Source of the DNA: Intoshia linei
Lineage: Eukaryota; Animalia; Orthonectida
Length of the DNA: 64,000 bases
Direction of reading: 5' to 3'
Assembly: GCA_001642005.1 (NCBI GenBank)
Contig: LWCA01000055.1
Coordinates: forward strand, 1 to 64,000
In this document: in pieces, positions 500-31,000 of the stretch
How the letters are laid out: each line of letters opens with the position of its first letter
Position numbering within the stretch: the first letter of the stretch is position 1
Notes under the pieces: model-generated
What the model was told of the DNA's origin: nothing
The model's database searches: none
What the model saw: the letters and a program-made list of their open reading frames with translations, nothing else
Translations under genes and position numbers: made by a program

Positions 500-914
500 T
501 TAATATAATATGAAAAAAACATTGATAAGTATTTTGATGATTACATTTAATTGGGTTTGGCGTTTTTTGAAGTATTGTACCATCATTCTTTTCTAAAAAT
601 ATATTTAATATAAATTAAATTGCGTTTTATAAACAAAAAATTACAACTTCATTCAAATCGTCTTTATCATCGTCTTCAAGAAGATCAAGCAAATTGTCCT
701 GCTTTTCGAGAATATTTGCATGAGTGTATAATGCATTATTACTAATCTGTTTTTTTTGAAGGCGAGATTTAATAGTCTGAATTGTTAATTAAAATGTTTT
801 CAAAATTTTTAAATACAAATACAATATTTATATTTTAGAAAATATAAAACATACAGATCTGGCAGACACAGCGTAAATGATGAAAAATAGAAAAAAGATA
901 AATATTCCTTTCAT
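500..914 (-). CDS. Small secreted precursor, gene A (exons 914-855, 776-645, 592-500?)
   Basis: Exon 1 = MKGIFIFFLFFIIYAVSARS (signal peptide) then GTATGT donor. Exon 2 = TIKSRLQKKQISNNALYTHANILEKQDNLLDLLEDDDKDDLNEV (acidic). Exon 3 begins KRMMVQYFKKRQ. TATATAAG lies ~50 bp upstream. 3' end is uncertain and may splice beyond the adjacent Helitron. Confidence 0.65.
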
Positions 915-2480: not shown

Positions 2481-4944
2481 AGGTCTACATAAAAGTCTAC
2501 ATACACCCAACTTTTTGATGATGCAATTTTAATACAGATTAAATTAAAAATTTTTTATAAATCACAGAAAAAATGATATTAGGAACAATAATATTGTTGC
2601 AAAAGTCTACTTAAACGTTCTAATATTTAATATGACACCCTTTAGCTTTAAATAAATCGCTAATTCTGTATTTATATCCATTTATAAGAGCATACATGAT
2701 ATTTTTGGACATTTACCCTATCATTCCTGGCAGTAAATGTCTAATTATTCATATTTTCAGGTTTCCTCGCATCACCGTTTTTATTAGTAAAACAGTTATT
2801 AAAAATATGTCTTACTAGGTTGACTGTAATGTACTACGTACAAACAGCACCTAGCTCTGCCGAGGGCACATTTTTATTATACCAAAAAAATAAATTAATG
2901 TTGAAAATCTAACTTAAAAATCCTATTATTCACTATTATCAATCCTTTAAAGGATTGAAAATCTAACTTAAAAATCCTACTATTCACTATTATCAATTCT
3001 TTAAAGGAAAAAATAAATTCACGTTGAAAATCTAATTTAAAAATCCTACTATTCACTATTATCAATCCTTTAAAGGAGTGGTTCCCAAATTTATTTCAGG
3101 TGGAACCATCATATCACATTATTTTTTACTATAAAGTAAATTATTCCATCTTAATTTATTTTGTTAACATTTACGTAAAGAATTTTAAAAACAATTGTTA
3201 TCCTATTTTTTTAATTTATTAGACAGAATGTGTGTATAATATTAAAAATAAAGTAAAACAGTCCAATCCTAAAAATTATCATAAATAACATAAATTCCAG
3301 AAAAAATAAAATTATAAAAACTTATTTTGTCATTTACAATGTGATGAATCATTGAGACGTTTCATCTTTACCTTTATGGTCTGTTTGCTTCTGAATGTCC
3401 GTTTTCTTTTTGCCATTTTATGTTAAATTTGAAACAATTATCAATAAAAAAATAACACGTTTAATAAAATATTTTGGAAAAAAAATATATAAATACTAAA
3501 ATGCTTGTTTGACCGTGAACTTGTCACTTATTCGGATTGAAATTTTTTGTGTGTATTAACAGGATACAACGGTACCATCTGTAAATTCAGTAAATTATAG
3601 GGCTGTTTTTATTAAAAAAAGAAGGGTAATTTTGGGTTTTGGCTCTGAAGATATAATTTTTTTAAATTTATGATAATGTTTATAATTATAAAATGTGTAT
3701 TAGCGTATATATTTTTTTAAATTTTCCAACTCGTTTGATTTTTAAAAAGAGGGACAATTGGAGTTTTTGACTGGTAAGATGTGAGTTTGGGAGGTTGACA
3801 TTTATCTTATTATACGTCTTGGAACAAACTGTAATTGATATGTGGACTTTAAAAAATTCTAACACTGGTAGTTATTTCAATAAAGTGGAACACACACACA
3901 CAAACAAAAATCGCGTAGCATATTTTATAAGTTAGGATTTTATTTATTTTTTTTATTTTTTAATTTATTTTTTTTAGTAGACATTTTCGATTTGATTTAG
4001 ATCAAGTGATTGGGAGTTCCATTCTAATACCTTGATTTTTTTGGAGCAAAGCAACATTTATGTTTTGTTCAATGTAATGTTTGCAATTGTCTTGTTGTAG
4101 TACAAAATTTTTCTCTAATTGAAGACTTTTTAATATACATTATACTATTTGACAAGTGATCCAACTCCCTTTATACCGAAACATCTCCAATAAACCAGAC
4201 TTCTACGGTATAGTTAACGGTGGGGTTCATATTTTTTTGTTCCAACCCCTCATTTGACCTACTCCACTGTTGAGTCTACACAAATCGTTTCTTATTATGT
4301 CCAGATAATTTAATTTTTGTTTTATCTGTCAAAATAACACCAAACCATTAAGAATTGGGCATATTTATATATTTTAAGGAAAAAAGGTATCGATTTTTTA
4401 TTCTTTTCACGGAAAAATGGTTGTCATATTGCTGCGAATGCTCTCAACCATCGTGCCTTATTTTTTCAAGATTTATAAAAGAATCTTTAATAATAGACCT
4501 CATTATCAAGGACATTAATCTATCATTTATTTTAATTGGCTTACCTGATCTTGGTTTATTTTTTAACAGAGTAAGATTTTTCCCATCTTTATATTATTAA
4601 TACTACACTAGGTATCGGCATAATTAAATTTTTGGAGATATTTCCATATGATAATCTTTTAAGGTATAATTCCACAACTCTAATCTTCAAATCATCCGAG
4701 TATTGGCGATATGGTAATTTTGACAAAATATATATAGCTAAATACATAATGTTAACTATTAAATAATTGTATCGATTAAATGTCTTGAAATATAGCGTTA
4801 ATCGAAAAAACTGAAGGGGATTTAATTTTCAATTTTTTTACATTTTTAGTAAATGGTTACATATTTTTATAGTAATAAAAAAATAATTATCATACTTGCT
4901 TCATCAAAAATTGGGGTGTATGTAGACTTTTGCAATGCACTGTA
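2481..4944 (-). mobile_element. Degenerate Tc1 (DD34E-type) transposon; transposase pseudogene ~4720-3980, interrupted by a Helitron
   Basis: TIR TACAGTGCATTGCAAAAGTCTACATACACCCC at 4944-4913 matches 2491-2520. Minus strand reads YSDDLKIRVVELY..KNKPRSGKP (HTH), FVLQQDNCKH and IKVLEWNSQSLDLNQIENV (Tc1 WPSQSPDLNPIEN motif), with stops and frameshifts. Confidence 0.85.
2815..3937 (-). mobile_element. Full-length non-autonomous Helitron nested in Tc1
   Basis: Minus strand: A|TC 5' end, TG microsatellite near the 5' end, 3' hairpin then CTAG|T, no TSD. Three internal tandem copies of a ~54 bp unit at 2900-3077. Confidence 0.85.
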
Positions 4945-6350
4945 TAATTAAAATAATTTAAATTATAATTTAAAATCAATTTTCTATTTATTAATAATGT
5001 GACCAAGCCGTAGAGATAAAACAATAAGAGATTAGCCCGATCAGATGAAAATGATAGGTCCTTACTGATTTAAAACATTTTTTGGTTACTCTATATCAGT
5101 GATGGCAGCCAACTAAAACTAGGTGTGTTAAATTTAATACTATTTTCAGAAATTTTTTTCTAGTGTTTTTATTAAAAAAATATTAGGTTAATCCAAAACG
5201 TCAATTAAGTCGAACAAATTAATGATGGAAAATGAGTTAAAAAATAATTTTTACATTTATTTGGATTTAAAAAATTGATTCTAACATGAATTTTTTCAAT
5301 TTAGGGAAATATTTGTAATCTTTATTTTCTTTTTTTATTTTTCTTTAATATCACGATAAAATATTGATAGTTTTCAGTCAAATGCCTTAATAATACTAAA
5401 CATTGCACATAGCACATAATGTTGAAAAAAAATTACAATTATAATAATTATTCAAAGTATGAGTCAATACAAAAATAAAAAATATTAATAATATAATAAA
5501 ATAATCAATTTAGTGCATCGCCCAAAAGTTAAACCTTTTCCCAACAAAGCTCTTTAAAACCCTTCATGTTGGTTAAATTATTAAAATATTTTTTTATGGA
5601 TATAAATTATTTTATTTACAAGGCTCTCCAAGATAATTATCAAATTAAATCATTCGGTCGCTTGCTTTTTTGTAATTTTCACTCCAAAAACTGCGTTTTA
5701 ACGTATCTGAATTTCATTATTGCAAATAAACACACAAAGTGCATTGGTATAAACTGTTAGTATCAACATTTTAATATGTACATTGTATTTGATTGACACA
5801 TACATAAATTACTCTGTAATACATGTACATGTATTTAAGGTTAACACTTATGCAAGGTTAAAATTGAAAAAGGTTGTGTTTGTGTCATATGTTATTATTT
5901 TACACATTTTATAGCTATTGACAAAAGGATTAATAATCATAATAATTATTAATAATAATTTATCAGTGACACAATAGGAATATGTAAGAAATAAAATATT
6001 AAATCACAGTAATTAAAGATAGTAAGTAAAATATTATAGAATTAGAACTATACCAAAGTAACTTATTAGAAAATCACATATAAAACCGACAAATTGACTG
6101 TATTATTTAAATAATTTACAAACATGTTGTTTTAAAATAAATTTTATTATTTACAAGATTAATTCTTATATCTATTGTTAAACATAAAATATTTAAGATT
6201 ATCTAATATCAAAACATGTACCATTTAACAAAAAACCTACCGAACCAATTATTTTCTTAATTAAATTTTATAGATAAATTGACTCTATTGTAAATAGGTG
6301 TATATATAACGGGGAAAAGTATATAAAATTCATTATTCTTTAATTTAAAT

Positions 6351-9300
6351 ATGAAAAATTTATATTTGATTGTCTTGTTTTTCGCAATCATCTCTGTGTC
6401 TACCACAAAAGTAATTTTATTTATAAATTTATAAAAAATTCATCACGTTTAATTTAAACTAGCATATTTACACAAATGGAGGTGCACTAAAAAGATTGGT
6501 ATTTAATTGTCGTATTTATATTAGGATGACCAATATATACCAATATACATATGTATGTACGTCGTTTGAGATAAAATCTAATCATTGTTATGTATTAATG
6601 ATTAATAATAATTCCAAAATTATTTCGTAATTATATCATCGGTACACAACCAATATCAGTGGGTCATTCCAGTTATACATTACAGCATATTGATATTCAA
6701 GTTATACATGTATATTCAGAATTAACGCACTACAGAACTGGCGAAATGTAGTGAAAATATCGTTTTCAGTGTTAAAAAAATAGAATTATTAATTTTTGTA
6801 GTGTATATCACTATAAAGTAATTAATAGTGGCTTCACTGTATTAATATATCTCTAAAATACATAGATTACATGTATTAATGTATATTATTTTATATAGCG
6901 TCGTAGTATTCATCTTAGTAGTAAACGTTATGTCGAAAATGGGTTGCATGAAGCAGTTGATAATACAAACAATGATGACCATGACCATCATGATAATGAA
7001 GTAAAAATAAAATTAAGAGGTATATTCGATTCTATTGGTAAATCAGTGAAAAGTGGATTGAGTAAGGCCGGAAATGCCATAAAAAAGGGATCAAAAAAAG
7101 TATTTAACAACGTGAAGAATGATGTCAAAAAGGCCGGAAATAAAATACAAAAAACGTTCAAAAATGTGAAGAATGGAGTGCATAAGGCCGGAAATGCCAT
7201 AAAAAAGGGATCAAAAAAAGTATTTAACAACATGAAGAATGATGTCAAAAAGGCCGGAAATAAAATACAAAAAACGTTCAAAAATGTGAAAAATGGAGTT
7301 CATAAGGCCGGAAATGCCATAAAAAAGGGATCAAAAAAAGTATTTAAGAACGCTAAAAATTTCGTGAATAATGCCGGAAATACCGTGAAGAATATGATAA
7401 ATAATGCTGGAAAAATTGGAAAAAAAAACAAAAATTCAAAGTTGAAATTTAAGAAATTTAAGACGATTACTAGTCCTATGAATCGCAAAATTATTACAAG
7501 TAAATTATGTTATATTATTTATCTTATCAAACATTTGTTATTAAATGTTTTAAATTTGATCAATTTATAATTTAGGAACAGCTAAACAATATAAAAGGGA
7601 TGCACTAAATGAAAACATGTGCGATGATGAAAAAACCCATCATCCATATGAAGTATTGGAAGGTTGATTAATTAAAAAATCAAATTTAAATTACGTTTAT
7701 TTAGATATTGATCCACAAGATTATGAGGAGAAAAAAAATGAAATTGCAAACCTTTTTTCACACATTTCAGAAGTGTTTAATGTTGGTTCCTACAAAGTTG
7801 GAGAATTTTTCCAAAATGATGAAGATATATCACGTAATAAAATTTAAATGTAATGATACATGTACATTGTATGTACATTGTACAATGTATATTAATATAA
7901 TTTATGTGATTTTGTCACATTAAAAGTAATTTATATTCACACTGTGCCTTATTTTACAAATGCAAACCGCTGAAATGTGTATACACTAATATTTTAAAAT
8001 ATTTTTTTAACATGTAAATACTTTTTTTTTTAATATTTAAATTAATTTAATTTAATCCAATGTAGCAACATTATAAATAATGAAAATTTGCAAAGTTTTT
8101 ATTTCTAAACGTATTCTAGTCTAGACCAGCGATTCCAAAATGCCGTCCGTCTTTATGCTAGTAATTTCGTTTTAGCGGTCCGTGAGAAATTTTATATTAA
8201 ATACTAATCCGTGGAGAAAAAAGTGTGGGACCCTTAGCCTAGACCAGTGGTTTTCAACCGGGGGGTCGCGAAATTTATCAGGGGGTCGTGAGAATTTGAA
8301 CACAGTATAAAATATAAATAAAACTGAATATGCTTTTTTAATATTTTCATTTATGTGAATTTATTAGATGTTTATAAGGGGGTCGCGAACACAAAAAGGT
8401 TGAAAACCACTGGCCTAGACTATTCGTTAAAATCACAAATTTCAAATTTTTGGTGAATAGACGAGTCTCCATTATATTACTACACTATATTTTTAATCTT
8501 ATTTCTTACTTAATAGTTATGTTTATATTTCTGATAGGACCAGAAGTGGAAGAATTGGTAGAAATAATCATAGACCAATTGGATAATATACGAGAAAGAT
8601 TTGGGCTAAGATTTGAAGAAATGTATCAACGCTTCATGAAATATTACATTTTCAGTAATTTATTCATTAATAACAATTTATTAACTTAATTTATAGTACA
8701 TTTATGTATATGTATTGTTATAAAATTACATTGTATTCTGTTGTATCTATAAAATGAAACAATTGTACAAAAAACGATTACATAATTTGTGAATTCTGTG
8801 TTCCACTAAATTATTATAAATTTTAATTCGATTTACCTCTAAACTCGCCATAAAATAAGTTTACGATTGAAATTTATTTGTAATAATAATTAGTAAAACC
8901 AAAATTAAATCAAATTATGAACCTATGTTGAAATAAAAATTACAATAACTTTCATCTCATTAATCTTAATTAAACGATAAATACTGATTTTACTTATTAT
9001 TATTTTAATTTTACATCTTATGTGTCGTGAATTTAATTTTAAACTATACATATTATATGTATTATCATATAACTTTATTAATATATTAATCAGCAAACTT
9101 TTTAATTTAAAGACATATTTTTTAATTTATTATAGACAATGAGACTAAAATCTTAAAAACAATGCAATTATAGTTAAACCCTATAAAATGATATTATAAT
9201 GCTTATATTTTTTAAAACTATTCCAAAATCTGTTTAATAATATTCCAAGACTTGTTTTATTTAAAAAAAGGGTAATTTTAGGTTTTGACTGAAGGTGTAA

Positions 9301-12300
9301 TTTTCTGAAGCTGAAATTTACGACAATGTTCATTGTTTTAAAACGCGTCAAAGAATTTATTTTTTTTCAAATTGTATGGTTGATTATATGTTTAAAAAAA
9401 GGTAGAATTCGGTTTTTGACCCTGAAGGACTCAACTTGGGAAATGAAACTGATATATAAACATTATGCGTGAAAAACTATATTAAAAATTGGCTTTTGTT
9501 AAATTTTAGATAAAGGTAACACACGGACACACACAGAAATTCAATTTTATATATAAACATTTTTAGTACATATACTTTATGATAAAGTCGTTTTATCATA
9601 ACTAACGTCATATTAAAAACTAAAGTCAGTTTTATTTTTGATTTTTGATCAGACGTGTCAAACTAAATTTGCTTGTCGGGCGAAATCTTTTTTGCATTAT
9701 GGTTATTGCGTTATTATCAATATTTATTTATAAATCAAAAAAATTAATTATAATTAATTTTTAACATGTTTAATTAATTTATATATCAGATTATAAGGAA
9801 TGTAATCCAGTTACAAGAGAGGAAGCAATGGAAGATTACTGTGTACAAGAGGCAATGAGTGAAATTTTTGATATTTTTGATCAAATCAGTAAATTTATAT
9901 TTAAATATGTACTGATACATCTATTGATCAATAGATTCCTTTATCATAACGCCATAAAAAATGACACGTAAGATGTGAGTTTGGGAGGTTGACATTTAGT
10001 TTGCGAACACGCCCGGAAAAAATAAGTTTATTTAAATAAAGTTGAACACACACACACAAAAATCGCGAAGCATATTATATAGGTAAAAGTATATTATTAT
10101 GTATAATATTATACAATGTTGGAAAAGTGACAAAAATGATGGTCCATTAACTAACATTTTTAGAAAAAAATTGTCCGCGAATCAATTATATTGTTGTCCT
10201 ATTTTTTATTTATATAAAATTGATATTGACATTAATAATAATAAACTACTAATATTAAAAAATTAGTTTCAATAAAAATGACTCACTACAACTACAGATA
10301 CAATTTATTTATGTAATAATTACAATTTATTTAGATTTTGATGATAGAGAATGTGATTTGATTGCTTCAACTGATAATTTCCATAGTATTTATTATTATT
10401 ATATATTATTATTATTGTATACATAAATTAAATAGTCAACGATTTTGGACACGCACTTGCAAGTGAATTTTCATGCTTTAGTAATAGTATTGCTGATATC
10501 TCTGACTTCGTTGCTAAATATGATTTGCCAGGTATATTGTTCTATCAATTATAAATAGTCAAATTAATATTTAAAAATTATAATGAGGTAAATTTACGTA
10601 CCATTATTTTATTACTACAAATAAAATTAATTAGACACTAGTTGACGGTTATGTACTACGTAATACTTACAAAAAACCTAGTTCTGCCGAGGGCGGACAT
10701 TTTTATTCTACCAAAAAAATAAATTCAATAAGAAAATCTTACTTAAAAATGTTAAATTCACTATTAGAAAATCTTTAAATGGTGGATCCCAAACATGTAT
10801 CACCAGGACCAGTCATTAAAAATTATAAGTGTTAATATTCATTTAAAGTGAAGTATCCCACTTAATTTTATTGTAACATGTGTAAAGAATTTTAAAAACA
10901 ATTTTTTCATCCCATTTTTTTAATCATTAGAGAGAATGTATCATCTATAAAATAAAATTAAAACAATAAAATCCTAAAAATTGAAAATAACCGGTATTTC
11001 CTTATTTAGTGTATGGTATATTAGGTGTAATTATATAATTATTCAAATATTCAAATTCATACAAAAATCAATTTAAATGTAACTTTATTTAATATATATT
11101 CAGTTTTTATGTTGTTTCTATCGATAATTATGTTGGTAATTCTTTTGATGTGTTTATCGTTCTTTATGAACCATTTTGTTTGTTTAAATTCATTTATAGC
11201 TTATTTATTTTGGTTTTTATAGATGTTTTAATTCCTCTTTAATTAACCCGAAAAACTAAACATAAAATTTATTATGTAATTAAAATGAATGTCATAAAAA
11301 CCAAAATAAATGAGGTAAATTTTTATTTTAAAAAACAAAATGGTTCATAAACATTGACAACCCATTAAAGGAATTACAACCACAACAACACATATATCTT
11401 TGACAGTTTTTAATAAATATAACTTTTATATTATATTTTAATAAAATCTTGTATTCTATTGTATTACAATTATAAATTAATATTTTGAATTTGAATACAA
11501 TAATAATGTATAATAATAAAGATAATAACACACTCTTAAATCGTACTAACCAAAGGAAAAAAGTAAATTAAGTTGTTAATCTTATTTATATATTAAAATA
11601 TTAACATAAGTTATATTTATCAAAAACTATTAAATTTATATGGGTTTCTATGGTTGTAATTCCTTTGGTGGATTGTCCATGTTTTGTGTACCATTTTTTT
11701 TAAATTTATTTCTAGGTCATTTATTTTTGTTTTTACGAAATTCATTTTAAGTATATAATGAACTTTATGTATAGTTTTTGGGGTTAATTATGAGGAATTC
11801 AAATATCATTAAAAACCAAAATAAATGAGCTAGAAATGAATTAAAAAAAAAAAAAATTGTCCACAAAGCATGATAAACACATCAAGGGAATTACCAACAT
11901 AATTATCCATATAAAAAAAATAAAGCTCATTATACATAAAATAAAATTATATTTTAAATTTATCTCAACATTTTTGTATGAATTGCAATAATTACATTTA
12001 AGGGGTAAATATTAACCGATTTCATTTTTTTGGGTGATAAATGCTTAAAATCAAAAAAGGCACCCACATGCAAAATGAGTTTTCTAATAAAAAAAGACAC
12101 ATCAAAAGTGGACACCCTAATGATATATGTTAATGTATATTGTGTATAATGTGCGCCAGCTTTCTGTTTTTTGTATTAATTTTTATATTAATTAATAATC
12201 TAAATTTTTGTATTAATAAATTAACAGACTTAGAAATTTAAAAAAGTATTTATTTCGGGTCAATTTTACCAATTTTGTTATAAATATAAAAATGATAATA

Positions 12301-13072
12301 ATAAAGTTATATGGAAATGTGTAAACTTTTATTGTTATAAAAATGTTATTGCAAATTGGGAACTTTTTTTGTGTTTGCAATTTATGTTAATGTTTATGAT
12401 TTTAAACTTAATCCACAATTTATCTTGAATAAAAATACATTTTTCATTTTTAAAAAAAGGAGTAATTTGGATAATTGGTCAAAACGATATAAGATTTTGT
12501 AAATGACATTGATGATAATGTGGATAATTTTTTAAATCTTTATCAGATTAGGTATTTTTTATAATTTTAGGATGGTTTAAATATAAATAAAAAGGATAGT
12601 TGTGGTTTTTCATCTTGAAGGACTTAATTTCTGAAAATAAAATTTGTGATAAAACATCAGCCTCGAACAACTGTAATTGAAATATGGAATTTTTATAACT
12701 TGACTCCTCTTATTTTCTTAAATAAGCTGGAACAAACAGACCGACAAACCGAGAAATCAATAAATAAACAAATATACATTTTTACATTAACTAAATTACT
12801 AGTTAAAAGTTTTGCAAAATTTTTGAAAACCACAATTACAAATATAAAATGAAACTATTAATATATTTTGTACATTATTGTACATTTTAGATAACAAAGA
12901 AGCCATTATCGTGTTCATGGCCAGTGTTTTGACAAAATCATATATAGTGGGAATGGAACTCCATCAATTCCAAAATCGATTGGAACAATTGGATCAATTA
13001 ATACTAAACAACGAAGATATAAATGGAGGAAATCCATTGCCGCAGCTCATTAGTTTAGATGATAATAATTAA
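6351..13072 (+). CDS. Secreted precursor, gene B: signal peptide, acidic propiece, cationic amphipathic tandem repeats, acidic Cys-containing helical domain (9 exons)
   Basis: Exons 6351-6410, 6899-7499, 7576-7662, 7705-7833, 8538-8654, 9790-9888, 10335-10385, 10436-10531, 12891-13072 join through GT-AG introns into one open frame: MKNLYLIVLFFAIISVSTTK|RRSIHLSSKR...DDHDHHDNEVKIKLR-GIFDSIGKSVKSGLSKAGNAIKKGSKKVF...YKRDALNENMC...DDNN*. TATA-like motifs at 6301-6327. Confidence 0.85.
7064..7346 (+). repeat. Coding tandem repeat, 120 bp (40 aa) x ~2.4
   Basis: Units 7064-7183 and 7184-7303 are nearly identical (KAGNAIKKGSKKVFNNxKNDVKKAGNKIQKTFKNVKNGVH); each unit has 22+18 aa sub-repeats starting KAGN. 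Confidence 0.95.
8245..8412. mobile_element. hAT (Charlie/Buster-like) MITE, 168 bp, in gene B intron
   Basis: TIR CAGTGGTTTTCAACC / GGTTGAAAACCACTG with a perfect 8-bp TSD GCCTAGAC; abuts an older hAT MITE at ~8127-8236. Confidence 0.9.
10638..10990 (-). mobile_element. Helitron 3' fragment
   Basis: CTAGTTGACGGTTATGTACTACGTA...CTGCCGAGGGC, homologous to 2815-3300. Confidence 0.7.
11022..12000. repeat. ~1 kb foldback element; each arm is itself an inverted repeat
   Basis: 11057 TCATACAAAAAT pairs with 11970 ATTTTTGTATGA; GATAATTATGTTGGTAATTC at ~11123 pairs with ~11888-11907; internal inverted repeats at 11130-11390 and 11650-11900. Confidence 0.75.
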
Positions 13073-13398
13073 TGCATACATGTAACTGAAATACAAATAT
13101 ACTAAAACATGAATTATTTAATTAGTTTTTGTTATTCGTAGCGATTTGCTAGTTAATAGAATTATATACATTATGTACTTATTAACACTAAATCACTAAA
13201 AAATGACATTATGTAACAATAAGTACAATTTGTTAATAATAATTTATTATTAATAAATAATTATTATAAGAACTGATGCAACGATTAAACAATAACTATG
13301 AAAAGTTGGTATACTATTTAAATTTATTTTATTTAAAGTATACAATGAACTAATTCCATCTACTACATTAATATATAATGCTTTGAGTAATTTTTAGT

Positions 13399-14683
13399 TT
13401 AAATTTTCATTTTTTTCGATTTCTGTATGATAGTTTCTTTAGACACTGTTGTACTGTTTGGAAAATTGAATCCATCATCTTTTCCACTATCCCATTCCAG
13501 TTGGTATATAGATAGTTTAGACTGAACATATCGATACCACTTCAAAATTTGTTATATAAATATTGCATATTTATATTCATGCTCATTAGTAGAATTATTG
13601 AAAATAGTATCTTGACACAAAACTTCCATAAATCGTGTAAAATCGATACCATAATTAACATCAAAATTGTTGGGTTCTATTTTGGAAAGTCTAGGAAGGA
13701 AATATTTGTTTGGTATCACAGAGGGAATGATTTCTCCAGTATCGAAGCCATTTAAATATAGTAAATCCATTTTATTATCTGGTAAAATTACCTTAACTAC
13801 ATCGGGATTAACAAACATTATGGAATCTGATGGCAAAAAATTCGCAATGTACCCAATAGGAAGTTTAGCTATTGCGGCAGCTTGAAATATAATATAGCTG
13901 TAAACTCCGTTTTTCATAAAAATAGTTCGAATAAATTATCCACGTAATGGATTCTTTGTGTCCCAGTTTTTGAGCATGATTTTGTACGATCACGTTACGA
14001 AACTTTGTATAAACACTTTCAGGTGGATAAACAATTTTGTTGTACTAATCAATTGTCGTGCAATGAAAATGTGGATAAAATAATTGGCTACAGCTTTTAA
14101 ATGATTAGTATACTCGTAAAACGTAAAGAAATCCAATGTATCTTTAAACAACAGTGTAAAGTAAAAGCTATTGTAAGGTGTTTCACAGTTTTTTCGGTTA
14201 TGATAGACACGCTTTTGAATGGTAATATTCTCGTACAAAATTGTTGTCGTGTAATTCAATATCCAATGCAGTAGCAGTGTAAAATTTATCAGTTGACACT
14301 GTAATGTATTTTTTTATTATTGAACCAAGATTGTTTTGATCACATTGAAACTTGTTCTTAACACTTTTAGACGACGTCAAATGACTACTATTTAACCCAA
14401 CGGTAGAGTTTGGATTGACATCTAATTTACTGTATTCTTTATCATCAATATTCTTCATTACGATGTCACAAGAATCCTTTTTCCTGGATTTATTTTAATC
14501 GTCTAAATTTTTATTGTAATAAATATTTATTGGAATGTTACCTTTAATTTTTATATCATGAATAACAACATTGTTTTATATTTTTTCGATAAGTCTAGTG
14601 CTAGTTTCATCATTAATGCAAATACCGGAAATATTAAGTTGGTCGATATCGATATTTATATCGTTCCATTTAGACTTGTTCAT
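13399..14683 (-). pseudogene. Decayed orphan gene between genes B and C
   Basis: ATG at 14683 and a GT-AG intron at ~14541-14503. ORF-track pieces 13990-14259 and 13552-13917 are in one frame separated by TGA/TAA; further TAA stops and one frameshift near 14200-14260. No recognisable domain. Confidence 0.55.
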
Positions 14684-16518
14684 AGTTTGATTTTATTCTT
14701 TCTCTAAAGGTAAAATTAAAAAAATATTTAGTTTGTATAAATTGCTCAATTCAAACCAAAATTAGTTCCAACAAAAAAACTCTAATGCTGGAAGCGGATA
14801 CATGTATTATTTTTAGTAATTACCGATATATTATGCAGTATATTCAATTTTTAAAGTTTTTTAAAATGTTAAAATATTATTCAAATTTAATGTTGCAGTC
14901 AAGTAAATTACTGTAGAATGAAAAGATAGTAACTAATATTTATCAATGCTAAATAGCACATTTTATGTTGACGCGACTGATGTAATTGGCTATTATACAT
15001 CAAAATAATTAAAATAAAATGCAGTTAATAATTGAATATGTGCTTTGCTTTCACTGGTCAACGGTGTCGATATGATTTTAGTCATGTCGAATGAAATACC
15101 GATTTACAAAGGAAATGTGATAGTGTAATTTTAATATACAAATTGTATTGTGTTAATGTCACAATATTAAATGTTCTAATATTGGATATTGAATTTAAAT
15201 TACAAAATAACCAATCATTTATTTTGTCTAATTTATGACATTATAACGGTTTTTTATCCGTACTAATAAATATGTATAATATGCTATGCAATATTTTTAG
15301 TGCGTGTCAGTATATGTTATTGATTATTTCAATAACTACCAGTCTTAAAATTTTATAAAGTCTCCATTTCAATTACAGTTTTTTCTGGGGTGTTAGCAAA
15401 ATAATTTTTAATCACCCAAACTCACATCTTACGAGTCAAAAAGCCTAATTATCCTTTTTTTTGAAAATCAAACTTGTTAGAGAATTTAAAAAAATATATA
15501 GTCTGATACAGATTTTAAAATGATAAATATTATCATCAATTTAAATTTAAAAAAAATATATCTTCGGGCCAAAACCCCAAATGACCCTTTTTTTATGAAA
15601 ACAGCCCTGTAAGATGATCAATTTTGTGTATGTTACGAATATCCATATTAAAATATTTGAACGCAAAAAAAACACACCTACTTTTGCCCTAAATGTCCTT
15701 AAAAAAGGATAATGTACTGTGAAAATTTATACTAAATTTAAAATTGAAGCTTACTAAATTCAATAATTAGTAATTAATTTGTTGCTATGATGTAAATTAA
15801 ATTTTTTTCTATCAAAAAATCGTTTAAAGTTAAAATATAATACATTTAAATCGTTACAGAAATTACTTTAAGATGCATATTACAGCAAAAATTGAATATT
15901 AAAGTGATTTTTTGATCGTGAAGGCATCACGTTTTCAGATTAAAATTTTTTATGTGTATTAACTGGATGTAACTGTATCAACTATATTATTTTTTAATAC
16001 CTAGGACTATTTTCATTTTTAAAAAAAGGGTAATCTGTGGTTTTTATCGTAAAAATCACTTCTCTAGGTTGGTGATTTATGATTATGTTTATGAGTTTAA
16101 ACACTATTCCAAAATTTATGTTGTATACAATTCTAGGACTCGTTTGACTTAAAAAAAAAGATAATTGGGGTTTTTTAATTAAAGAACTTAAATTCTGAAA
16201 GTGAAATTTGCGATAAAACATGACACTCGAAAAATTTATTGAATTTTTAAAGCTTGAGTCTTCTTACTTTCTTAAATAAACTGATACACAGATAGACAAA
16301 TAAATAAAAATACATACATTTTTATCTAAATTACTTTATATACGTAAGGTGGAGATGATGATGATGATATTGGATCAGTTTTAACATTTCCTATATAGAT
16401 AGGTTTATCAATTTAATATATGAAATTGACAAACTAAAATGAAACATTTACGAATAAAATTTTAATAATTTATTAATTATATTTTACTATATAATATTGA
16501 ATTTTTTTTTTTTGATAT

Positions 16519-19147
16519 TTATATAGTTCCCTCGATGGTCTCTGGTAAGTTTCGTTCATCCAACAACATTTTATCAATAGAATGTAAAGATTGCGATAGT
16601 GTCCAAATTTTATTTCCAACTTGAACTATTCCAATCAAAACATCACTCATGTATTAAACAACGTCTTCAGGTCCAGCTAAAATGTACATAGTTATATAAT
16701 TAACATTTACTTGCACAAATTAGTTAATGGATATACAATTCAAACATCATCTTTTTAAAAAAAAGTAAATTATAGGTACTATCCAAACGTAGACCAAGAG
16801 GATGCATTTATAATGAAAATTAGTACAATACACCATTATTTCTTTCAGCAGACTTATATTTATCAAAATTAATATATATTAATTATTTATAATTAATAAT
16901 TATAATTATTATAATTATAATATAATATATAATATAAAAAAAGCACTTTTGAAATGATAAAACGAGTCAAAAAATAATAAAATGTTATCGTTGATTTATA
17001 TTTACAATGCGTTTGAAAACAAAAATTTTATATTAAAATCATTAATCAAATGAAAAAGAAAAACGGATATTGCTTAAATAGAATTAATCAATATCAAATA
17101 AATTAGATTTAAACCACAAAAATTATCAAAATTTTCTGATTCAAATTAGTTGATCATATATTTATAACAAAAAATATGTTACAACATTAAAATTTTTAAA
17201 TGGCCGATCTTTCCTTAAAATACGTTTTAACATTAAGAATGATCGTTCTACTGAATCGGAAGTGCATTGCAAAGTTGTAAATCACAATATAAAGATGATT
17301 CCATATTTCCTACAGGATTTATAATATCATTAATGTGAGAGTAAATTTCTTTGATTTATAAATAAAATATAAACCAAAGGATAGGCAATCTTGACAGAGC
17401 TAAATTTTCCAAAGTATAATAGTGAAAGGAAAAAACAATAGTTAGGAAATGTAATGAGATGATCAGATAAGCTTGAGAAAAAGAAAACGACTGAAAAATT
17501 TATTAGGAAAATAAAATTTAAAACTGTTTAAATATAAAATTAACCATTTAGTTAACATGAAAATGTGAAAGTTTTAAAATTTAAATGTAAAAATTAAATG
17601 TTTACTGTATAATACAAAATGTCTACTTATATAGTATTCACAAAAGAGCAAATAAATTTTGAAAAAATCGAGCACTATAAATTGAAAAACGAGTACATTT
17701 TTACATTCCGAGTAATCATGCAACATTTGTATTAAAAAGAGCAGATGTCAATTATTTTAGTGTATATGAGTATTTCGATCACTTTACTCGTTTTTATCTA
17801 CTCTAATTATAACAGTGTAAATATATATACTTAAAGCTTTATTAAACATAAAATCACCCATGGATCATGGGTCATGGTATTATATTATATAAATGTTATT
17901 ATATATTACTAGGTTCCGGTAATTCATTGATGAAATTAATAACTTCTCCAATAGCATCAGTGAAACAAGATATTTTGTCTAAACTGTTACCAAATTCAGA
18001 AACTATAATTTGGCAAATTATAATTATTAAATTAAATTTTAATAAACAAATATAAATTAAAATGAAATGTTACTGGAAGCCATGTCATTAATATCAAAAT
18101 TGGGACATATTCCATTTTCGAAATCTAAATTGAAAATATAAATTTTTTTATTTTTCAACTGTTAAATAATATGATCAATGATTATACATAAATTACTTAA
18201 ATGTACTTACCTATTTCAGATAAAATTTCAATAAGTTCATTTACTGCCTCAGATGTACATTCATCTTCCCAAATGTCAAATTTGCGTGCAGGGTCACAAT
18301 TTTTGAAATCTATTTTAAATTTATTGGTAGTTTTTAAAAGTAAAATTACTAAATGCATAAAATTGCATAAATATTTCAAAAACTTTCTGGAATTTTCTTC
18401 CTTCATTTTCCTCAAGGCTATTTAATTTATCTAATATGATTTCTACTAATTCTTCTACATCAGCAACTAAATGTATTGTATAATTACATGATATTTATTT
18501 AAATTTAATCAAGACCCTTTTTTTTCATATTGTTTCGTTATTTCGTATATTATAATGCCATTATAGTTAAAAATTCACCTTCTGGATCAGATTCAAAGAA
18601 ATTTTTTATTTTTTCAATTCCGCTCTCGAATTTACCGTGTACACGTTCAATCATATCTAGCCAGTTTTTTCCATTTTCAAACATTTCCTGCTTTTCAATT
18701 TCTAAAATTTAATAAAACAAATTTTTTGTTAGATTCATTATATTTCATGTTAATTAAAATTAGTAAATTGTGTTACATTCGAATTTTTTATTTGGATGCT
18801 CTTCATCTTTATCTTTACGGCATTTTTTTTTTCCATTCATTTCTTTTTTTATTTTGATTAAAGATTTCATTATTGGATGTGTACGTTTATCAACTGACCC
18901 ATGTGTTAAATCGGCTATAGCGTCATTAAGTTGTCTTTTAGTTTCTATGACAGTTCTTTTTACTGTGAGTTTAACGTTGTTTTTCTTTTTTGCCTCTTCT
19001 ACATCATGGTGGGCTTTATCAACTATATCTTTTTTGCCTCGCATTACACTTCTTAGCTTACTTAAATCATCGTCAATTTCGTCCATGTTGTCATCATCAT
19101 CATCATTTTGACCATCACGTTTCAAAAGTAATTTTATTACTCTTTTC
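16519..19147 (-). pseudogene. Gene C, paralogue of gene B, with premature stop(s); first (signal) exon not located
   Basis: Exons 19147-~18777, 18701-~18579, 18466-18350, 18309-18211, 18124-18074, 18002-17910, 16676-16519. Exon lengths 117/99/51 nt equal gene B exons 5-7. ADVEELVEIILDKL aligns to PEVEELVEIIIDQL and the Cys residues align. In-frame TAA at 16654-16656. Confidence 0.8.
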
Positions 19148-19409
19148 TTTAAAATATTGTACTATATTTAATATATTGTAGTATCATTTTAAAAATTTAT
19201 TATTAATTACTATTATTAATATTGATATACATGTCATGTTGCATGTTGTCATGTAGATGTTAAATTTATATAGACCAGGGGTGTCAGACTCAATTTGCTC
19301 AACGGGCCAAATGTGAAAAAAATTATGTTAAAACTAACAGATTTAATTAATTAATATATATACACTATAGTATTTAATAATATATTGTATTGTAAACAAT
19401 TATTTATGA

Positions 19410-21782
19410 ACCTTGATTGATAAATCCTTTCCCAAAATTAGTTCTTTGTGGTTGTTCATCTATTACGTTAATAACAATATGATTATTGTCACCGCTTAGA
19501 TTATTCGGCCTGACATCTATTAGTAAAACATATATAATAAATAATCAAGCTAGTATATATATTGTATACTAGCTTGAGTGTTATGTTCTTCGTACAAACA
19601 TTAACGAGCTCTGCCGAGTACGGCCTTTTTTAATTCAAAATTTCTATCAAAAAATACATTCAATAATATTAGCTTACATAAAAATGCTACTATTCACCAC
19701 AGTTAACACTCGTAAAATGTCTACTTTTTTGTGAAAGTGATCACGTTTTCCACTATAGGTACAATTATCATACTACCATAGTTATGGTACTAATTAAACT
19801 AATTAAAAAAATAATGAGTCATTATTAAGGACTTAGACTGTATATGTATTAATATTTATTTATTATATTTATCTAAGAATCTAAATGTATTAAATATGTA
19901 ATCATTGTCATCAGAGCTCAGTTTCGGATTTCAAATTTTCAGCCAGGGGAACAAAATAATTATAATTATTAAGGGGCTAAACTGATGTAATGCATTTAAA
20001 TTAAAATTTTTGTAATATGTTTTTTCTTCTAGTTTTCATTCTACTAAATTTTTCAACAATGGCATCAAAATCGAGATTTTCGACTAGTTCTTTCGATGGT
20101 CAACAAAGTGAAGTGTGATAATTCAACTTAAACTGCTGTTATTAGCATAAAAAATAATTTATAGATTGATGATCATTGATCATTACATAAAACGTATACA
20201 ATAATCACAAACATAATTCAATAAATGCAATTTCATGGGTCCCAAAAAAAGTTTGGTAATTTAATACAAAAATTAAAATATTTTAGAGGTACATTTGTTA
20301 CGCCAAGGGGCTCTTAGATCCACTACTGCTTGTGCTAGTTCAGTTAGGAGCCAAAATTAATTGATCTTTTACAACTGGTTATTTAATTTTATCAAAATGA
20401 ATGTAATACTGCTTCCAAGCACTAAATTTCCTTCTCTAACAATTTCTCGTACATTTACTTGTGTGTTTTCAATTAAACTATCGTTTGTTTCATTTTCTGC
20501 ATTCGGTGTTATATCTTTTAATAAAAACATGTTAATATAATAATTAATCTGAATGCTTATAATCTTAAATAAATACTTTATTTAAATTTAAAGCTAAAAT
20601 ATAATTAAGACTACACATTAAGGTGTTAACATTTTTCTAAAACATAAAATCCAAGGTTGTACGGCATGAGAAATGAGTTAAAACTAACCTCTATGATTTT
20701 AGTATTGCAAAAACATCAGACTACTCAGCGATTTAAAATTACTCGTTTAATTTGAAATTAACTTTATTTTGATTGTTAATTATTAAATTTATTATAATTT
20801 TGAAGATGATTAACACTGTCATTTAATAATTCATCATCAATATACTTGATTCACACCTTCTCACGAAGATATTGGACTTTGTGTATTGCACGTTCGGCCA
20901 CTTCGTTTGTTAGAGCAACATTAAATGGGGGTATGGAGGTATAATTATGTTTTTTTAGAAACATAGACAATAAAAATATTTAAAATGATCAACCTCACTC
21001 GAATCGACATTTTTCCAACACCCCATTCTAGATTATATTATTTTACATGAAAATACACTAGATGCGCACTAGTCGCTCTATTCTTGAATACGTGTGACAC
21101 CCTAATCGACATATTAAAGAATTATTTTTAAATTTTCACAATTTCAGATAAAACTAATTTTATCAATTACATAAATTTAAATAGATATTAATTTTAAAAT
21201 ATTTCTGGCATTAATTTTTTTATAATTAGAAATTGCGGACAAGTTGAGTTATTTTAAATGTTTTTAAATTTTATATTTTAATTTCTTGATATATAAGATA
21301 AAATGTGTCCCTATAAACCCGAGCTAAAACTTAAAAACGGGAAAATTAACTAATATTACAAACTTACATTTTAATGGTGTTTACATTGCATGTCATACAA
21401 TATTATCAGTGGTGGCTCTTCATTGAAGTTTTATGGGCTACAGTGCAGTGTTATAATTAAATTAACTGAATAAAATTAACTAAAATTATTTAATTAAATT
21501 CATACACTAACAGTGCACTGTTTGTAGCCTGATATTCGTAAATTTCCTCGTGTAACAGTATTACAATTCAATACATGCCAAATACATGTCTATGAATATG
21601 TTCATGCAGTTTCACTAATTATTTTGTCTACGAGCCGCCACTGAATATTATATTCAGATTAATCCTTATTATTATTATTGTTTGAATACCATTATGTGAA
21701 AATTGTACATGGCCACCTTTTGTGTTCCTTTCATTCAATTTTTGGTCGGCCCTATGTCGAAGAATATGCATGGATGTGACAT
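19410..21782 (-). CDS. Exon-like segments (~21782-21691, ~20514-20410, ~19516-19410) of an unresolved gene, possibly the 5' part of gene C
   Basis: Each begins after a AG acceptor in phase 1 and is open: DVTSMHILRHRADQK..., DITPNAENETNDSL..., DVRPNNLSGDNNH...; no homology recognised and linkage unproven. Confidence 0.3.
20619..21104. mobile_element. hATm-like internally deleted element
   Basis: Ends TAAGGTGTTAAC...GTGACACCCTA; minus-strand remnant TNEVAERAIHKV (C-terminal NxxAER motif); the left end resembles the reverse complement of 51256-51316. Confidence 0.6.
21407..21643. mobile_element. hAT (Tip100-like) MITE
   Basis: TIR CAGTGGTGGCTC / GAGCCGCCACTG; perfect 8-bp TSD AATATTAT. Confidence 0.85.
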
Positions 21783-23580: not shown

Positions 23581-23704
23581 CAGGGGTGTAAGACACAATT
23601 TGCTTGGCGAAACAAATATGTGTACAAAATTGTTATAAAAAATAAAAATTTATATTATAACGCAAGCCGGAAATGGCCCGAGGGTCGCATAATTGACACC
23701 CCTG
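23581..23704. mobile_element. hAT MITE
   Basis: TIR CAGGGGTGT / ACACCCCTG; perfect 8-bp TSD GTTAATAA overlapping the piggyBac right end. Confidence 0.85.
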
Positions 23705-25007
23705 GTTAATAATAAATGTTCAAAATGACTACCATCAGATTGGATACATAAATCAATGCGTTTAAGGAAATTATTCTAAACATTAGATAATTCTTGAGTG
23801 CTAATTGAGTTAATACTGTTAATGTTATTGGTTTTTAAGAATTCTATATTTAAAGGGGAATTTTTATAAATTTTAGATTTTATTGATCCCCACAAATAAA
23901 AATCATATGGCGTTAGATCAGGAGACCTTGGTGACCATATACTTTTTGATATTATTTTTTCGTCAAATTTTTGATTTAACCAATTCATGAATATTAATGA
24001 AGTATGGCATGTTGCTCATTCTTGTTGAAACCACACTTTTTTGCGTTCAATTGGGTTTAATAAATTGTAAAATTGCTCCAAAATATTAATATACAATTTA
24101 CTGTTATTATTAGTAGTAGTAATACACATCAATTTTGTATCATTCTGTATTTACGTCAATTTACATACAATTAAATTGTAATTGGTAAAATTTATCTGAA
24201 GTTAAATTATAGTTACACTAATTAATGTATTCGCGCAAATGGTTATATTTATAATAAAACCATGCACGGTCAACAATTTCAAATTCTTATCCGCCGCCTA
24301 TTCGTTGTCAATTTTTTTAAAATTTGAGCATTTAAAATAATTACATGTTTGAATATCGTAACTATTTTTTATTTTAAATTTAAACTCTAACATCATATCC
24401 ATGGTAAGTATAAATAAGGTATTATATAAGTATATTATAAGTATTAAGTATAAATTTCGAGAAATGTTAAAAATGTCAAATTTTTCGAAGTAAATTTAGT
24501 TAAAATCATTTATCTCTATTAAACGTTCTGTAGTGATTTTCAAAGCTATATAAGGTGATTTCAATAAGCTTTTCTATATTTATTTATCTATATTTTATAT
24601 ATTATGAATATACGTGTTTTTCGACTGTGATTAAAATTATTTACAAGATAAATTATAGATATGCATTATTGTACATAAATAATCAAATTTATTTTAGAGT
24701 AAAATATATTAATTAGTCAGTAATTTTCTTAGAAACTTTGTTATACATATTTGTATTACAATATTGATTTCACGAAATTCCATAATTCGCCAAAAATTTT
24801 GAATTTCCAATTTTGGCGATTAGTGGAGGTGGAACTTTACATCAGGGATTATTTTAACAAATTATTACAACTACACATGTAGTTGTTAACATTATTATAT
24901 TATTTTAAATTATATATTGTTTTTCGGTTCCCTTGAAACGTAAATACAATTATAATAAATTATATGTTGACTTGGTACAATTACTAATAAAAATATTTGA
25001 GAAAAAA

Positions 25008-28000: not shown

Positions 28001-31000
28001 GAGTGACTATTATTAAGAGATTAAAATTATTTTTCAATTAAAAATAATCTTGTTGCGATTTTTTATTATAAAGTATTATAATCAAAATATTTTACCTTTT
28101 TTTTCTTGGACAGATTACAGTGCCAATATAATTTAATTGAAATATAATATTAGATTAATTAATATCTAATCATTATTTATTATTAATCTCGCCTTATAAC
28201 TACTGCAGCACATACATACTTTACGCTATTGAATATTTGATTTACGTTTATTGTTTTTATATCAATATCAATTTCAATTCAATTTTATTGCAATTTTTTA
28301 AAATACTAAAAATGACCACAAGAATTGGAGATATTTTGGTTGGTCCATATGTCGGTTTCATTTTTAATGAACAGAAGCTACCTACTAGTAAAAATGTTCT
28401 TTGTAGAATATTGTCAAAAAAGAATCAAAACATAATATTGCCATTTCGTGGTATTGCAAGAGAGATTTTAGATATATATTGTAAAACTGGATTAAATTTA
28501 ATAGGCATTGAACCTATTTATGTTAAATTAAAATATTTATTTCAAAATTACAAAAATGCATTAAGAAATCCTAATTTTTATGTATCAAACAATTTTAAGC
28601 ATGACTTAAATGCTTTATGTGAGGTTGCCAAATTCGAGCAAAGCAAGACACTTAGTGAAGATATAGATTTTTTCGAGAAGCAAAAAATCGGAACAGGATA
28701 TATGGCCAGGGAACAAAATGATACTCCACATAAAAAAGAAATATTGGGTACCAGTAAAAGTGAAAAAAACTATTATATTAAAAAGAAAAATTCGTATGGC
28801 CCGTCAATGTGGATCTTATGGTAGTCCATCATTTAATTATGATATGTCAACTGAAGAAAATATATTTAAAGAGAAAGACGATTTTAAAATTAATATGTAA
28901 CGCGTATGTAACTCTAAGTCAATTTTAACACGAGGGGCAGCTATATTAATGGTAAATTATTAACACTAATGTAAATTAAGGTTTGGCAACCTTTTTCATT
29001 TTGTGGATGACTTTTATCAAACTTTACACATGATAAATTTTATAAAAATTTTATTATAATACAAACAAATAAATGTTTGGCGTAGGTAATATCAAATCAT
29101 GATTAATTTTGATAAATTTATTATTCACGTTAATTAATGTAACAATGCATTCTAATCAAAATTTTAATCCCATTTTTTATGACGGTTATATATTGATTGA
29201 TAAAAATTTAAAAATAAATCATTTACTCAAAGGGCCACCAAAATTAATATGTGGACCACTGGTTGCCGACTTCAAATACAAATAATGTATATATTAAATT
29301 TATGTTAATTAAATAACATGTATTATTATTAAAGTATATATTAATTTAGGGTACATCTCATAAAACCAATAGAAGGAACAGAATGTTGGTTAGAATGAAA
29401 GACATGAAAACTATTCGGAGTTTAGTTAACAAAATTGTCAAATTTGTTATATATTTTGATAGCAAAAAATTTGGAACCGACGAAAAAATTGCAGTGGTGG
29501 CAATTGACACCGAAGCAGCCAAAGAAATTGTTTACAATTGAATTATAATTGAACATTGAAAAAATACACACGTTTAGTGCTAATTGCCCTTGATTCTTTG
29601 ATGGGTGTGACACCCTAATATACATTGTACATTATGTATATTATACAATTTATATTAGGCATTTTATATATACACTTTTTGTAATACATTGTATATTTAT
29701 TTTTTTAAACGGTGATTAAAAACATACAGTGAAGCTACTATTCGCCAAAATCGGAAAGTCAACATTATTTGGTAAATAAAATAACGTATTTTCTTGGAAC
29801 CTGCTGACAATGTAGTATATATCATTATTGTTAATACTGAATCCAGTATTTATCTACACTTTCCAGTTCTCTAGTTATCCATATATTTAAGGCTTTTCTA
29901 TATAACATTTTTGGTCTCATTTTGCAAAAGAGTAGGCGATTTTTTTCACGTTAGCCAATCCCTCTTAATCGTCGTGTCACTAATTATAATTATTCATCAG
30001 TTATTTATATTTTCTTTATGTAATTTTTTTAGTGTCTACAAGGACAGTAAAACGGATGATATGATTATAAGTTCCATTGTGTACAAATTTAATTTTAAGG
30101 TATTTCCTTATTTATATAAATTAACTAGCTTTACTGTTATGTACTTCGTAAAAACAGCAGATAGATTTGCCAACGGTCGACTTTTTAATTGATTATATAC
30201 AGTGTGTACCATTTAAAACAGTGCACTTAAAAATAAGAAGTTTATTAAAAAACATTTTGACTGTAATAATTAAATTTGCTCATTTATAAAATTATTTGGA
30301 TATTTATCTAAAGTATTTAGGAAAAAGTTAGAAACTTAAAATTATTTAATTTACAATAAATGTTCAAAATGACCACCATCAGATTGGATACATAAATCAA
30401 TGCGTTTAAGGAAATTGTTGTAAACATTAGATAATTTTAGAGTGCTAATTGAGTTAATACTGTTAATGATATTGTTTTTTACGGATTCCATATTTGAAAG
30501 GGAATTTTTATAAATTTTAGATTTTATTGTTCCCCACAAATAAAAATCACATGGCGTTAAATCAGGAGACCTTGGTGACCATATACTTTTTGATATTATT
30601 TTTTCGTTGAATTTTTGATTTAACCAATTCATGGATATAAATAAAGTATGGCATGTTTTAAACTCGATTAATAGCTAGACAAGAAATATTCTTTTACTCG
30701 TGGTTAACATTTCAAAAAATTAATATGAACTTGTTTTTATACAGTTGATTTGTTTTTTATTTCGTTAGTGCACTCATAATATGAAATGTTTTAACAAGTG
30801 CACTGTTCTGAATAGTACACGCTGTACAACGAGTGTATAATTGTAAGAACAATCCAATTGTTACAACCCTAAAAAATCATCATAGAAAACGTGAATTCCA
30901 GAAAAAATAAAAATTTAAATACATGTAGTACTTCTTTCTTCTATGATGAATTTCTGATAAAGCAATGTTTCCATTGAAATTTAATCCATTTAATAATAAT

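Follow-up and report, generated by a model that had tools for sequence, protein, structure and literature searches.

An orphan gene family with a carrier-and-payload-like precursor layout in the orthonectid Intoshia linei

Introduction

Ascaris cecropins, the BRICHOS-associated antimicrobial peptides (AMPs) and the linear peptides of spiders are made as carrier-plus-payload precursors and, judged by analogy of layout, the gene described here, A3Q56_00836 of the orthonectid Intoshia linei, appears to resemble them while being a member of none. It lies in the first 64,000 nucleotides (nt) of contig LWCA01000055.1, the whole stretch of DNA that was analysed and that we call the window. The layout that we propose as fixed for this gene and its relatives would consist of a signal, a short N-terminal peptide, a Lys-Arg (KR) site, an acidic spacer, a Lys-Leu-Arg (KLR) site, a variable payload, a second KR and an acidic, disulfide-containing helical bundle (the C-domain). 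Orthonectids are parasites of reduced organisation that are related to annelids; they form a plasmodium inside the host, and their adults live briefly and do not feed (PMC12249979, PMC6543705).

The precursors of Ascaris cecropins P1-P4, which also come from an animal parasite, share with A3Q56_00836 a signal, a basic amphipathic helical peptide and an acidic pro-region, the last of which is thought to restrain the peptide (PMC6780910). Their mature peptides measure 31 amino acids (aa) and are highly conserved, whereas the payload here has 133-168 aa, varies between paralogs and has been lengthened by a repeat, and a predicted folded, Cys-containing domain of 245 aa takes the place of the acidic pro-region. 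There is no sequence similarity between the two systems. In polychaetes, a BRICHOS carrier is joined to a variable peptide (PMC6780910), as in arenicin, alvinellacin and nicomicin; common to both are the annelid lineage, with which orthonectids cluster (PMC6543705), and a cationic payload that varies, next to a folded domain that is conserved and lies in acidic surroundings. There the peptide is a C-terminal disulfide hairpin, whereas the payload of A3Q56_00836 is a Cys-free predicted helix N-terminal of its carrier, and neither a BRICHOS domain nor a C-terminal disulfide beta-hairpin was found with Pfam or in the AlphaFold model. The complex precursors of spider linear cytolytic peptides, whose cationic peptides are mirrored by acidic propeptides (PMC8290080), likewise have an acidic propeptide ending in Arg, a cationic residue at every third or fourth position, and repeats. 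Unlike them, A3Q56_00836 lacks Glu-containing processing quadruplets, acidic linkers between repeat units and Arg within the repeat, and has a large conserved C-domain. Cathelicidins combine a conserved disulfide-bonded carrier domain with a hypervariable cationic helix. That combination recurs in A3Q56_00836 in reversed order, with a carrier that is predicted to be all-alpha, not cystatin-like, and that gave no Pfam or fold match.

The 11-mer helices of perilipin 4, apolipoproteins and alpha-synuclein are also long, Pro-free and amphipathic, with an 11/18-residue periodicity, few large hydrophobic residues and a downstream bundle; the A3Q56_00836 protein, in contrast, is predicted to be secreted, cleavable and far more cationic, so that the likeness is one of periodicity only. 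Finally, the granule lattice or trichocyst matrix proteins of ciliates and the granins, are acidic, abundant and processed granule cargo encoded by gene families, acidic proteins being typical lattice cargo of dense-core granules (PMC2133959). They have no sequence or fold link to the present family, whose own granule site is putative.

Gene structure and transcription

A phmmer search with the Lys-rich exon led to the 473-aa protein OAF71384.1 (P0001), annotated as hypothetical protein and identical to the nine-exon model, which has an open 473-aa frame, GT..AG at all introns and phase 1 for the exons after the Lys-rich one. Sequencing run X1 carries no RNA label, yet it behaves as RNA, because its assembled contigs, which were used for the splice joints, skip GT..AG intervals exactly at the introns. 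Spliced joints support introns 7500-7575, 7663-7704, 7834-8537, 8655-9789 and 9889-10334, and a loose contig end at 10531 runs on into the opening letters of the exon at 12891. The 50-nt intron 10386-10435, where the records are cut at a skipped repeat and no joint row is found, is placed by its GT..AG ends, the frame and paralog homology. In addition, a 36-nt exon at 6463-6498 splits intron 1 (joints 6410>6463 and 6498>6899); it is the main form in the spliced contigs, with no direct 6410>6899 joint among the run X1 joints listed, and is missing from the NCBI model OAF71384.1. Therefore, the gene has ten exons and a protein of 485 aa. The original prediction of nine co-spliced exons thus held for the five introns with joints and for the loose end at 10531, and had overlooked the tenth exon; the features it described were all found at their positions. 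Alternative last exons at 12494-12551 plus 12900-13053 were ruled out by the loose RNA end at 10531 and by paralog homology.

A3Q56_00836 is a real, spliced gene in a window of 25% GC (assembly size, 41.6 Mb). Its spliced transcript is apparently abundant: contig depth is 10,000-14,000 over the exons and about 10 in most intron bins, a measure that cannot rank genes and is a rough sign of abundance only. At 7035-7330 (plus strand), over the repeat, the summed contig depth is about 10 times that of the flanking exons; overlapping short contigs may have produced this excess as an artefact, or repeat copies may have been collapsed in the assembly.

All exons are on the plus strand. Exon 1 (6351-6410) encodes a hydrophobic, signal-peptide-like N-terminus of 20 aa and ends at a splice joint. 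Exon 2 (6463-6498), confirmed by joints and by a homologous 33-nt exon in the paralog A3Q56_06554, adds 12 aa, which bring one more KR and a furin-type RLRR completed across the junction. The first part of exon 3 (6899-7018) carries KR (6923-6928) and a His/Asp-rich spacer of net -5 that ends with KLR (7010-7018).

The cationic payload

Directly after this KLR, exon 3 encodes the stretch that the original prediction had described as rich in Lys, almost free of acidic residues and regularly spaced in its hydrophobic residues, and all three traits were confirmed. Residues 61-228 of P0001 contain 46 Lys, 3 Arg, 3 Asp and no Glu, for a net charge of +46. The amphipathic region proper, residues 61-193 (7019-7417), is of 133 aa with a net charge of +32, pI 10.9, no Pro, no Trp and a single Leu; it is followed directly by Gly-Lys-Lys and then by a basic, weakly amphipathic linker (7418-7499). 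Within it lies a tandem repeat of 120 nt (7046-7372; 40 aa, composed of 22+18) in about 2.6 copies and without Arg. Repeat units 1 and 2 differ at only 3 of 120 nt, two of the changes being silent, so the expansion is recent.

Hydrophobic periodicity peaks at 99.0 degrees, equivalent to 40 residues per 11 turns, with a power of 4509, whereas 1000 shuffles reached 1561 at most. This angle draws a straight apolar stripe along all 133 aa; the stripe is narrow (about 110 degrees) and made of Ala, Val, Ile, Phe and Gly, with Lys along both edges, and the centre of the polar face is occupied by Asn. A heptad coiled coil was ruled out, with only 0.09 at 102.9 degrees. The lipid-binding discriminant of the payload averages 2.05, the threshold in the HeliQuest method being 1.34. 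Over 18-mer windows the mean hydrophobic moment is 0.52, above those of apolipoprotein A-I (0.39), perilipin 3 (0.35) and alpha-synuclein (0.30) (PMC5889406), at a mean hydrophobicity of 0.01 and a net charge of +0.24 per residue. With a high moment and a mean hydrophobicity near zero, the payload would bind anionic surfaces through its charge and its length and not by inserting deeply. We infer that the payload is unfolded in water and forms one unbroken amphipathic helix of about 20 nm on such surfaces.

The Lys-rich exon is single-copy in the I. linei genome. Used as a phmmer query it gave 380 matches; among those checked, several were long tape-measure-like or apolipoprotein-like repeat proteins and others kinase or unnamed proteins, and we read them as shared periodicity and rejected homology.

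The acidic C-terminal domain

Exon 4 (7576-7662) carries KR (7593-7598) and the start of the acidic domain with its first Cys (7620). It is followed by exons 5 (7705-7833) and 6 (8538-8654), both delimited by joints and modelled by AlphaFold as long helices 1 and 2, and by exon 7 (9790-9888; joints), a short helix with two invariant Cys. Exon 8 (10335-10385; joint and paralog homology) is a loop with a conserved Cys, exon 9 (10436-10531; paralog homology and AlphaFold) a predicted helix with another, and exon 10 (12891-13072; loose RNA end, with the frame from paralog homology) holds the last long helix, an acidic tail and the stop. After KR the domain has a net charge of -38 and 5 Cys. An AlphaFold model from an eight-row alignment of family proteins and single exons reached a predicted local distance difference test score (pLDDT) of 76.8 and a predicted template modelling score (pTM) of 0.73; it shows five helices, four of them of 28-41 residues, roughly one per exon, in agreement with the acidic, Cys-bearing helical domain predicted originally. 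With the single sequence only, pLDDT was 37.5. Four Cys are invariant where covered, the fifth stands directly after KR in all four long members of the family, and A3Q56_06554 has an extra Cys pair on helices 1 and 5. The C-domain has no hydrophobic segment of transmembrane length.

Foldseek against the PDB and viral models returned nothing at E <= 0.001 (PDB E >= 0.26), and in the ESM Atlas TM by query did not exceed 0.39. Exhaustive structural alignment found generic bundles, the best with Z 9.8 and a root-mean-square deviation of 5.8 Å over 139 residues; the best rows were BAR/F-BAR folds, and Z 9.8 is below the value of about 13 that the aligner requires for helical bundles. Sequence searches, with the exons or the public 473-aa P0001 as queries, detected no homologue of the C-domain outside I. 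linei among 5.8 billion proteins (in a search limited by word and length), and none in the ESM Atlas, PDB sequences, Pfam/NCBIfam, prokaryotic genomes or metagenomes; these negatives hold at the available sensitivity and imply neither a new fold nor absence from other orthonectids. By sequence, the proteins thus appear to form an orphan family with homologues within the I. linei genome only. A match to a known structural or storage protein family, which would have spoken against the original prediction, did not appear in the Pfam, protein, PDB or fold searches.

A five-member family

The C-domain exons located four further loci in the I. linei genome, one of them in the window. Besides A3Q56_00836, the family comprises A3Q56_06554 (contig C2242; an intact gene for 423 aa that has the 33-nt homologue of exon 2), a C2203 paralog whose 5' end was not found on its contig, a C1508 paralog of three exons followed by the contig end, and a minus-strand copy in the window at 16519-19146. 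The latter has the same exon sizes, a short acidic spacer, KLR and a different, +10 payload, along with two in-frame TAA, at the junction after the payload exon and early in the last exon, which we read as X; its 5' exons, including a signal exon, were not identified. NCBI A3Q56_00840 corresponds only to the 158 aa between the two TAA. This copy is probably a pseudogene or a truncated copy. Compared with the C2203 copy, it has a ratio of nonsynonymous to synonymous substitution (dN/dS) of 0.17, which means that function, if lost at all, would have been lost recently. Directly upstream of it, at 19397-19515 (minus strand), lie 40 coding-looking codons and a stop, which could belong to the end of a different gene or represent one of the missing 5' exons of this paralog. 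No paper naming the locus tags of the family was found in the literature.

Exon sizes of 123/117/99/51/96 nt and phase 1 are kept nearly exactly, with exceptions of 129 and 93 in one gene each. The C-domain tree has two groups, A3Q56_00836 with A3Q56_06554 (48% identical) and the other three. Across the C-domain exons dN/dS is 0.17-0.4 in most pairs; the 123-nt exon and the pairs that include C1508 have higher values, and dS is close to saturation. The C-domain accordingly seems, from these comparisons, to be under purifying selection. What precedes it varies strongly in charge. The four long members have spacers of net -5, -38, -9 and -49, payloads of +46, +27, +10 and none, and C-domains of -38, -41, -28 and -24. 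The +27 payload is rich in Lys and Ala, with a moment of up to 0.54. The payloads of A3Q56_00836 and A3Q56_06554 are unalignable (E 0.18) although their C-domains are 48% identical with dN/dS of about 0.4, and a payload that cannot be aligned while its flanks are kept is a pattern as in AMP precursors. Asp/Glu blocks of 67-96 aa occur in the family, even where there is no payload. In the C2203 paralog (L014, 3923-4277, minus strand) an exon is largely a tandem Asp/Glu/Asn hexapeptide repeat of 96 aa and net -49, which recalls acidic Ca-binding or mineral-binding proteins.

Upstream of the ATG, about 235 nt (6115-6350, plus strand, with TATA-like and CCAAT-like words) are 72% identical between A3Q56_00836 and A3Q56_06554. 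The region scores 120 against a background of -6.5 +/- 13.6 (maximum 48 of 1500); conservation ends about 235 nt upstream, and the DNA after the stop is not conserved. This suggests shared regulation of the two genes.

Processing sites and known classes

Among the four long members, KR before the acidic spacer is present in all, and KLR after the spacer and KR before the C-domain in three each. Cleavage after KIKLR, as predicted originally, has its only support in the conservation of KLR in three of these members, and the paralog counterpart RKLR|S is a canonical convertase site. I. linei has three loci with both an S8 subtilase and a P-domain, that is, kexin-type convertases, which makes cutting at basic sites feasible. 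The genome also holds one copper monooxygenase of the peptide-amidating class, and an amidated 133-mer could arise at the Gly-Lys-Lys that immediately follows the apolar stripe.

With respect to known classes, A3Q56_00836 has the layout of linear alpha-helical AMP precursors (signal, acidic propiece, basic site, cationic amphipathic helix), and layout only. No AMP family passed the Pfam cut-off, the one sub-threshold stretch being 12 aa of Entericidin, and there was no match among PDB sequences; the protein thus appears, as far as its sequence indicates, to be a member of no known AMP family. The six-Cys pattern within about 80 aa that marks saposin-like pore formers (caenopores) is absent: five Cys are spread over 160 aa, the helices are long, and no Pfam or listed fold match was obtained. 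The best Pfam match was ApoLp-III (E 2e-6), which at 28.4 bits stays below the cut-off of 36.3.

Other features of the window

Intron 5 holds a short element of higher GC (8130-8420) with the look of terminal inverted repeats at about 8245-8415, probably a small non-autonomous transposon. Decayed stretches resembling Tc1/mariner transposases were seen by eye at 4000-4700, 23700-24050 and 30351-30632, all on the minus strand; one of them was scanned and gave no Pfam match. Tail-to-tail with A3Q56_00836, and between both paralogs, coding-looking stretches at 13552-14750 (minus strand; open reading frames (ORFs) 13552-13917 and 13990-14259) had no Pfam match. At 510-742 (plus strand) an ATG with a hydrophobic stretch precedes 43 aa of open frame that contain one Cys; this region gave no match to the family profile. 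Further on, 52832-54618 and 58907-59821 (plus strand) hold long ORFs of 345 aa and 178 aa without Pfam match, plus a 304-aa Glu/Lys-rich repeat ORF.

Discussion

We tentatively favour the reading that A3Q56_00836 encodes a convertase-processed granule precursor that releases a polycation for anionic membranes. Kexin-type convertases would cut the basic sites and set free a polycation of 133-168 aa, whose charge, during storage, the acidic bundle may partly balance in cis (without its signal the proprotein has a net charge of only +9) and the co-regulated A3Q56_06554, with its long Asp/Glu blocks, possibly also in trans. The released polycation would coat and weaken anionic membranes, most plausibly bacterial ones, by avidity in a carpet-like manner, with a role in selective surface defence; the length of the payload, the lack of Trp, the single Leu and the mean hydrophobicity near zero speak against a broad cytolysin. 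Secretion, cleavage and co-packaging, like every function proposed here for the family, are what we infer. Of the AMP-precursor-like system predicted originally, the layout, the basic sites and the unalignable payload between kept flanks stand, while the length and the lack of an AMP family match do not fit.

The original prediction further held that the acidic domain keeps the payload inactive. Self-inhibition of this kind would fit the near-balanced A3Q56_00836 and not the family, in which the bundle is retained even where the payload is absent and more polyanion appears; the charge of the C-domain (-24 to -41) does not follow that of the payload, and one paralog has no basic payload. Since the payload varies and the acidic domain stays, the latter may rather serve all members as an unchanging carrier or assembly domain, probably with a role of its own, and not a dedicated inhibitor.

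Several points weigh against the release of a membrane-directed polycation. Between conserved sites the payload measures 133-168 aa, whereas AMPs usually have 10-100 aa (PMC6780910); smaller products would require cutting at KK pairs. Its low mean hydrophobicity, with no Trp and one Leu, is unfavourable as well. KIKLR|G in A3Q56_00836 departs from both convertase consensus forms, dibasic and R-X-X-R. The amidation-like Gly-Lys-Lys motif arises in 78% of shuffles and has no counterpart in the paralog. Moreover, one paralog has a -49 block in place of a payload and another a payload of only +10. Taken to its full extent, the proposal would be a new orthonectid carrier-and-payload system, built on a new helical carrier with an exchangeable N-terminal slot. 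Its co-regulated members would contribute giant polycationic helices and polyanionic blocks, whose charges cancel out within the granule until convertases release the longest known linear membrane-active polypeptide of host defence or host manipulation; we regard this as rather doubtful.

A secreted polyelectrolyte material is nearly as likely as a membrane-directed payload, which leaves it a possibility short of even. The bundle would then be an assembly domain, and oppositely charged blocks of the paralogs would co-condense in granules, as a complex coacervate or a Ca2+-condensed core, before forming a coat, a cuticle layer, an adhesive or a matrix. The other family proteins are polyanions (-48, -71, -22), with A3Q56_00836 as the lone near-neutral member; the Asp/Glu blocks persist even without a payload, a 235-nt promoter is common to A3Q56_00836 and the polyanionic A3Q56_06554, and chains could be cross-linked through the odd fifth Cys that follows KR in each of the four long members. 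The apparent abundance of the transcript and the typically acidic nature of dense-core granule lattice cargo (PMC2133959) point the same way. Yet an in-register apolar stripe over 133 aa exceeds the needs of a simple polycation, and the composition is not rich in Gly, Tyr and Ser, unlike the cement type.

It is less likely that the acidic bundle is itself the active product, as a host-directed effector, a pheromone or a ligand, with N-terminal blocks that drift freely as discarded sorting or solubility propeptides. In its favour, only the bundle is conserved and apparently under purifying selection, its fold is predicted with confidence from eight rows, and the Cys pair of A3Q56_06554 on helices 1 and 5 fits a real bundle. 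On the other hand, a recently expanded repeat that holds its exact helical register, and cationic helical payloads without sequence similarity in two paralogs, suggest selection on the physical properties of the payload, and a pore former would call for the transmembrane-length hydrophobic segment that the C-domain lacks.

Equally improbable is a lipid carrier or yolk protein of the apolipoprotein or perilipin type, in which the 11/18-mer helix would coat lipid particles and the C-terminal bundle complete the plan. ApoLp-III is the top Pfam match, though under the cut-off, the look-alike matches bear apolipoprotein-type or tape-measure repeats, an 11-mer helix plus a four-helix bundle is the perilipin plan and the hydrophobic fraction of the payload (0.32) is near that of known lipid-binding helices (PMC5889406), and orthonectid adults do not feed (PMC12249979). 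However, the payload carries +0.24 per residue, whereas Plin4 has +1 per 33-mer. Perilipins are not secreted, a KR site lies between helix and bundle, the fold matches listed include neither an apolipoprotein nor a perilipin, and one paralog has no helix. Membership of the LEA or perilipin families, the alternative offered originally, falls away: no LEA family is among the best 25 of 35 matches and 3 acidic residues in 168 are too few for LEA group 3, while the signal-like N-terminus and the lack of a perilipin Pfam match leave only the 11/18-mer periodicity as a fit.

Few animals have a gene set as reduced as that of Intoshia linei, yet the species has retained a five-member, apparently orphan and apparently strongly expressed family with a modular, putatively processed layout. 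If the payload is membrane-active, as in the reading that we favour, it would be a linear defence polypeptide of a new type, unusually long and made with a new carrier domain, and would provide the first molecular handle on orthonectid defence or host action. If it is a material, the family would be a compact natural case of opposite-charge blocks on one scaffold. Either way, the pieces are defined precisely enough for testing.

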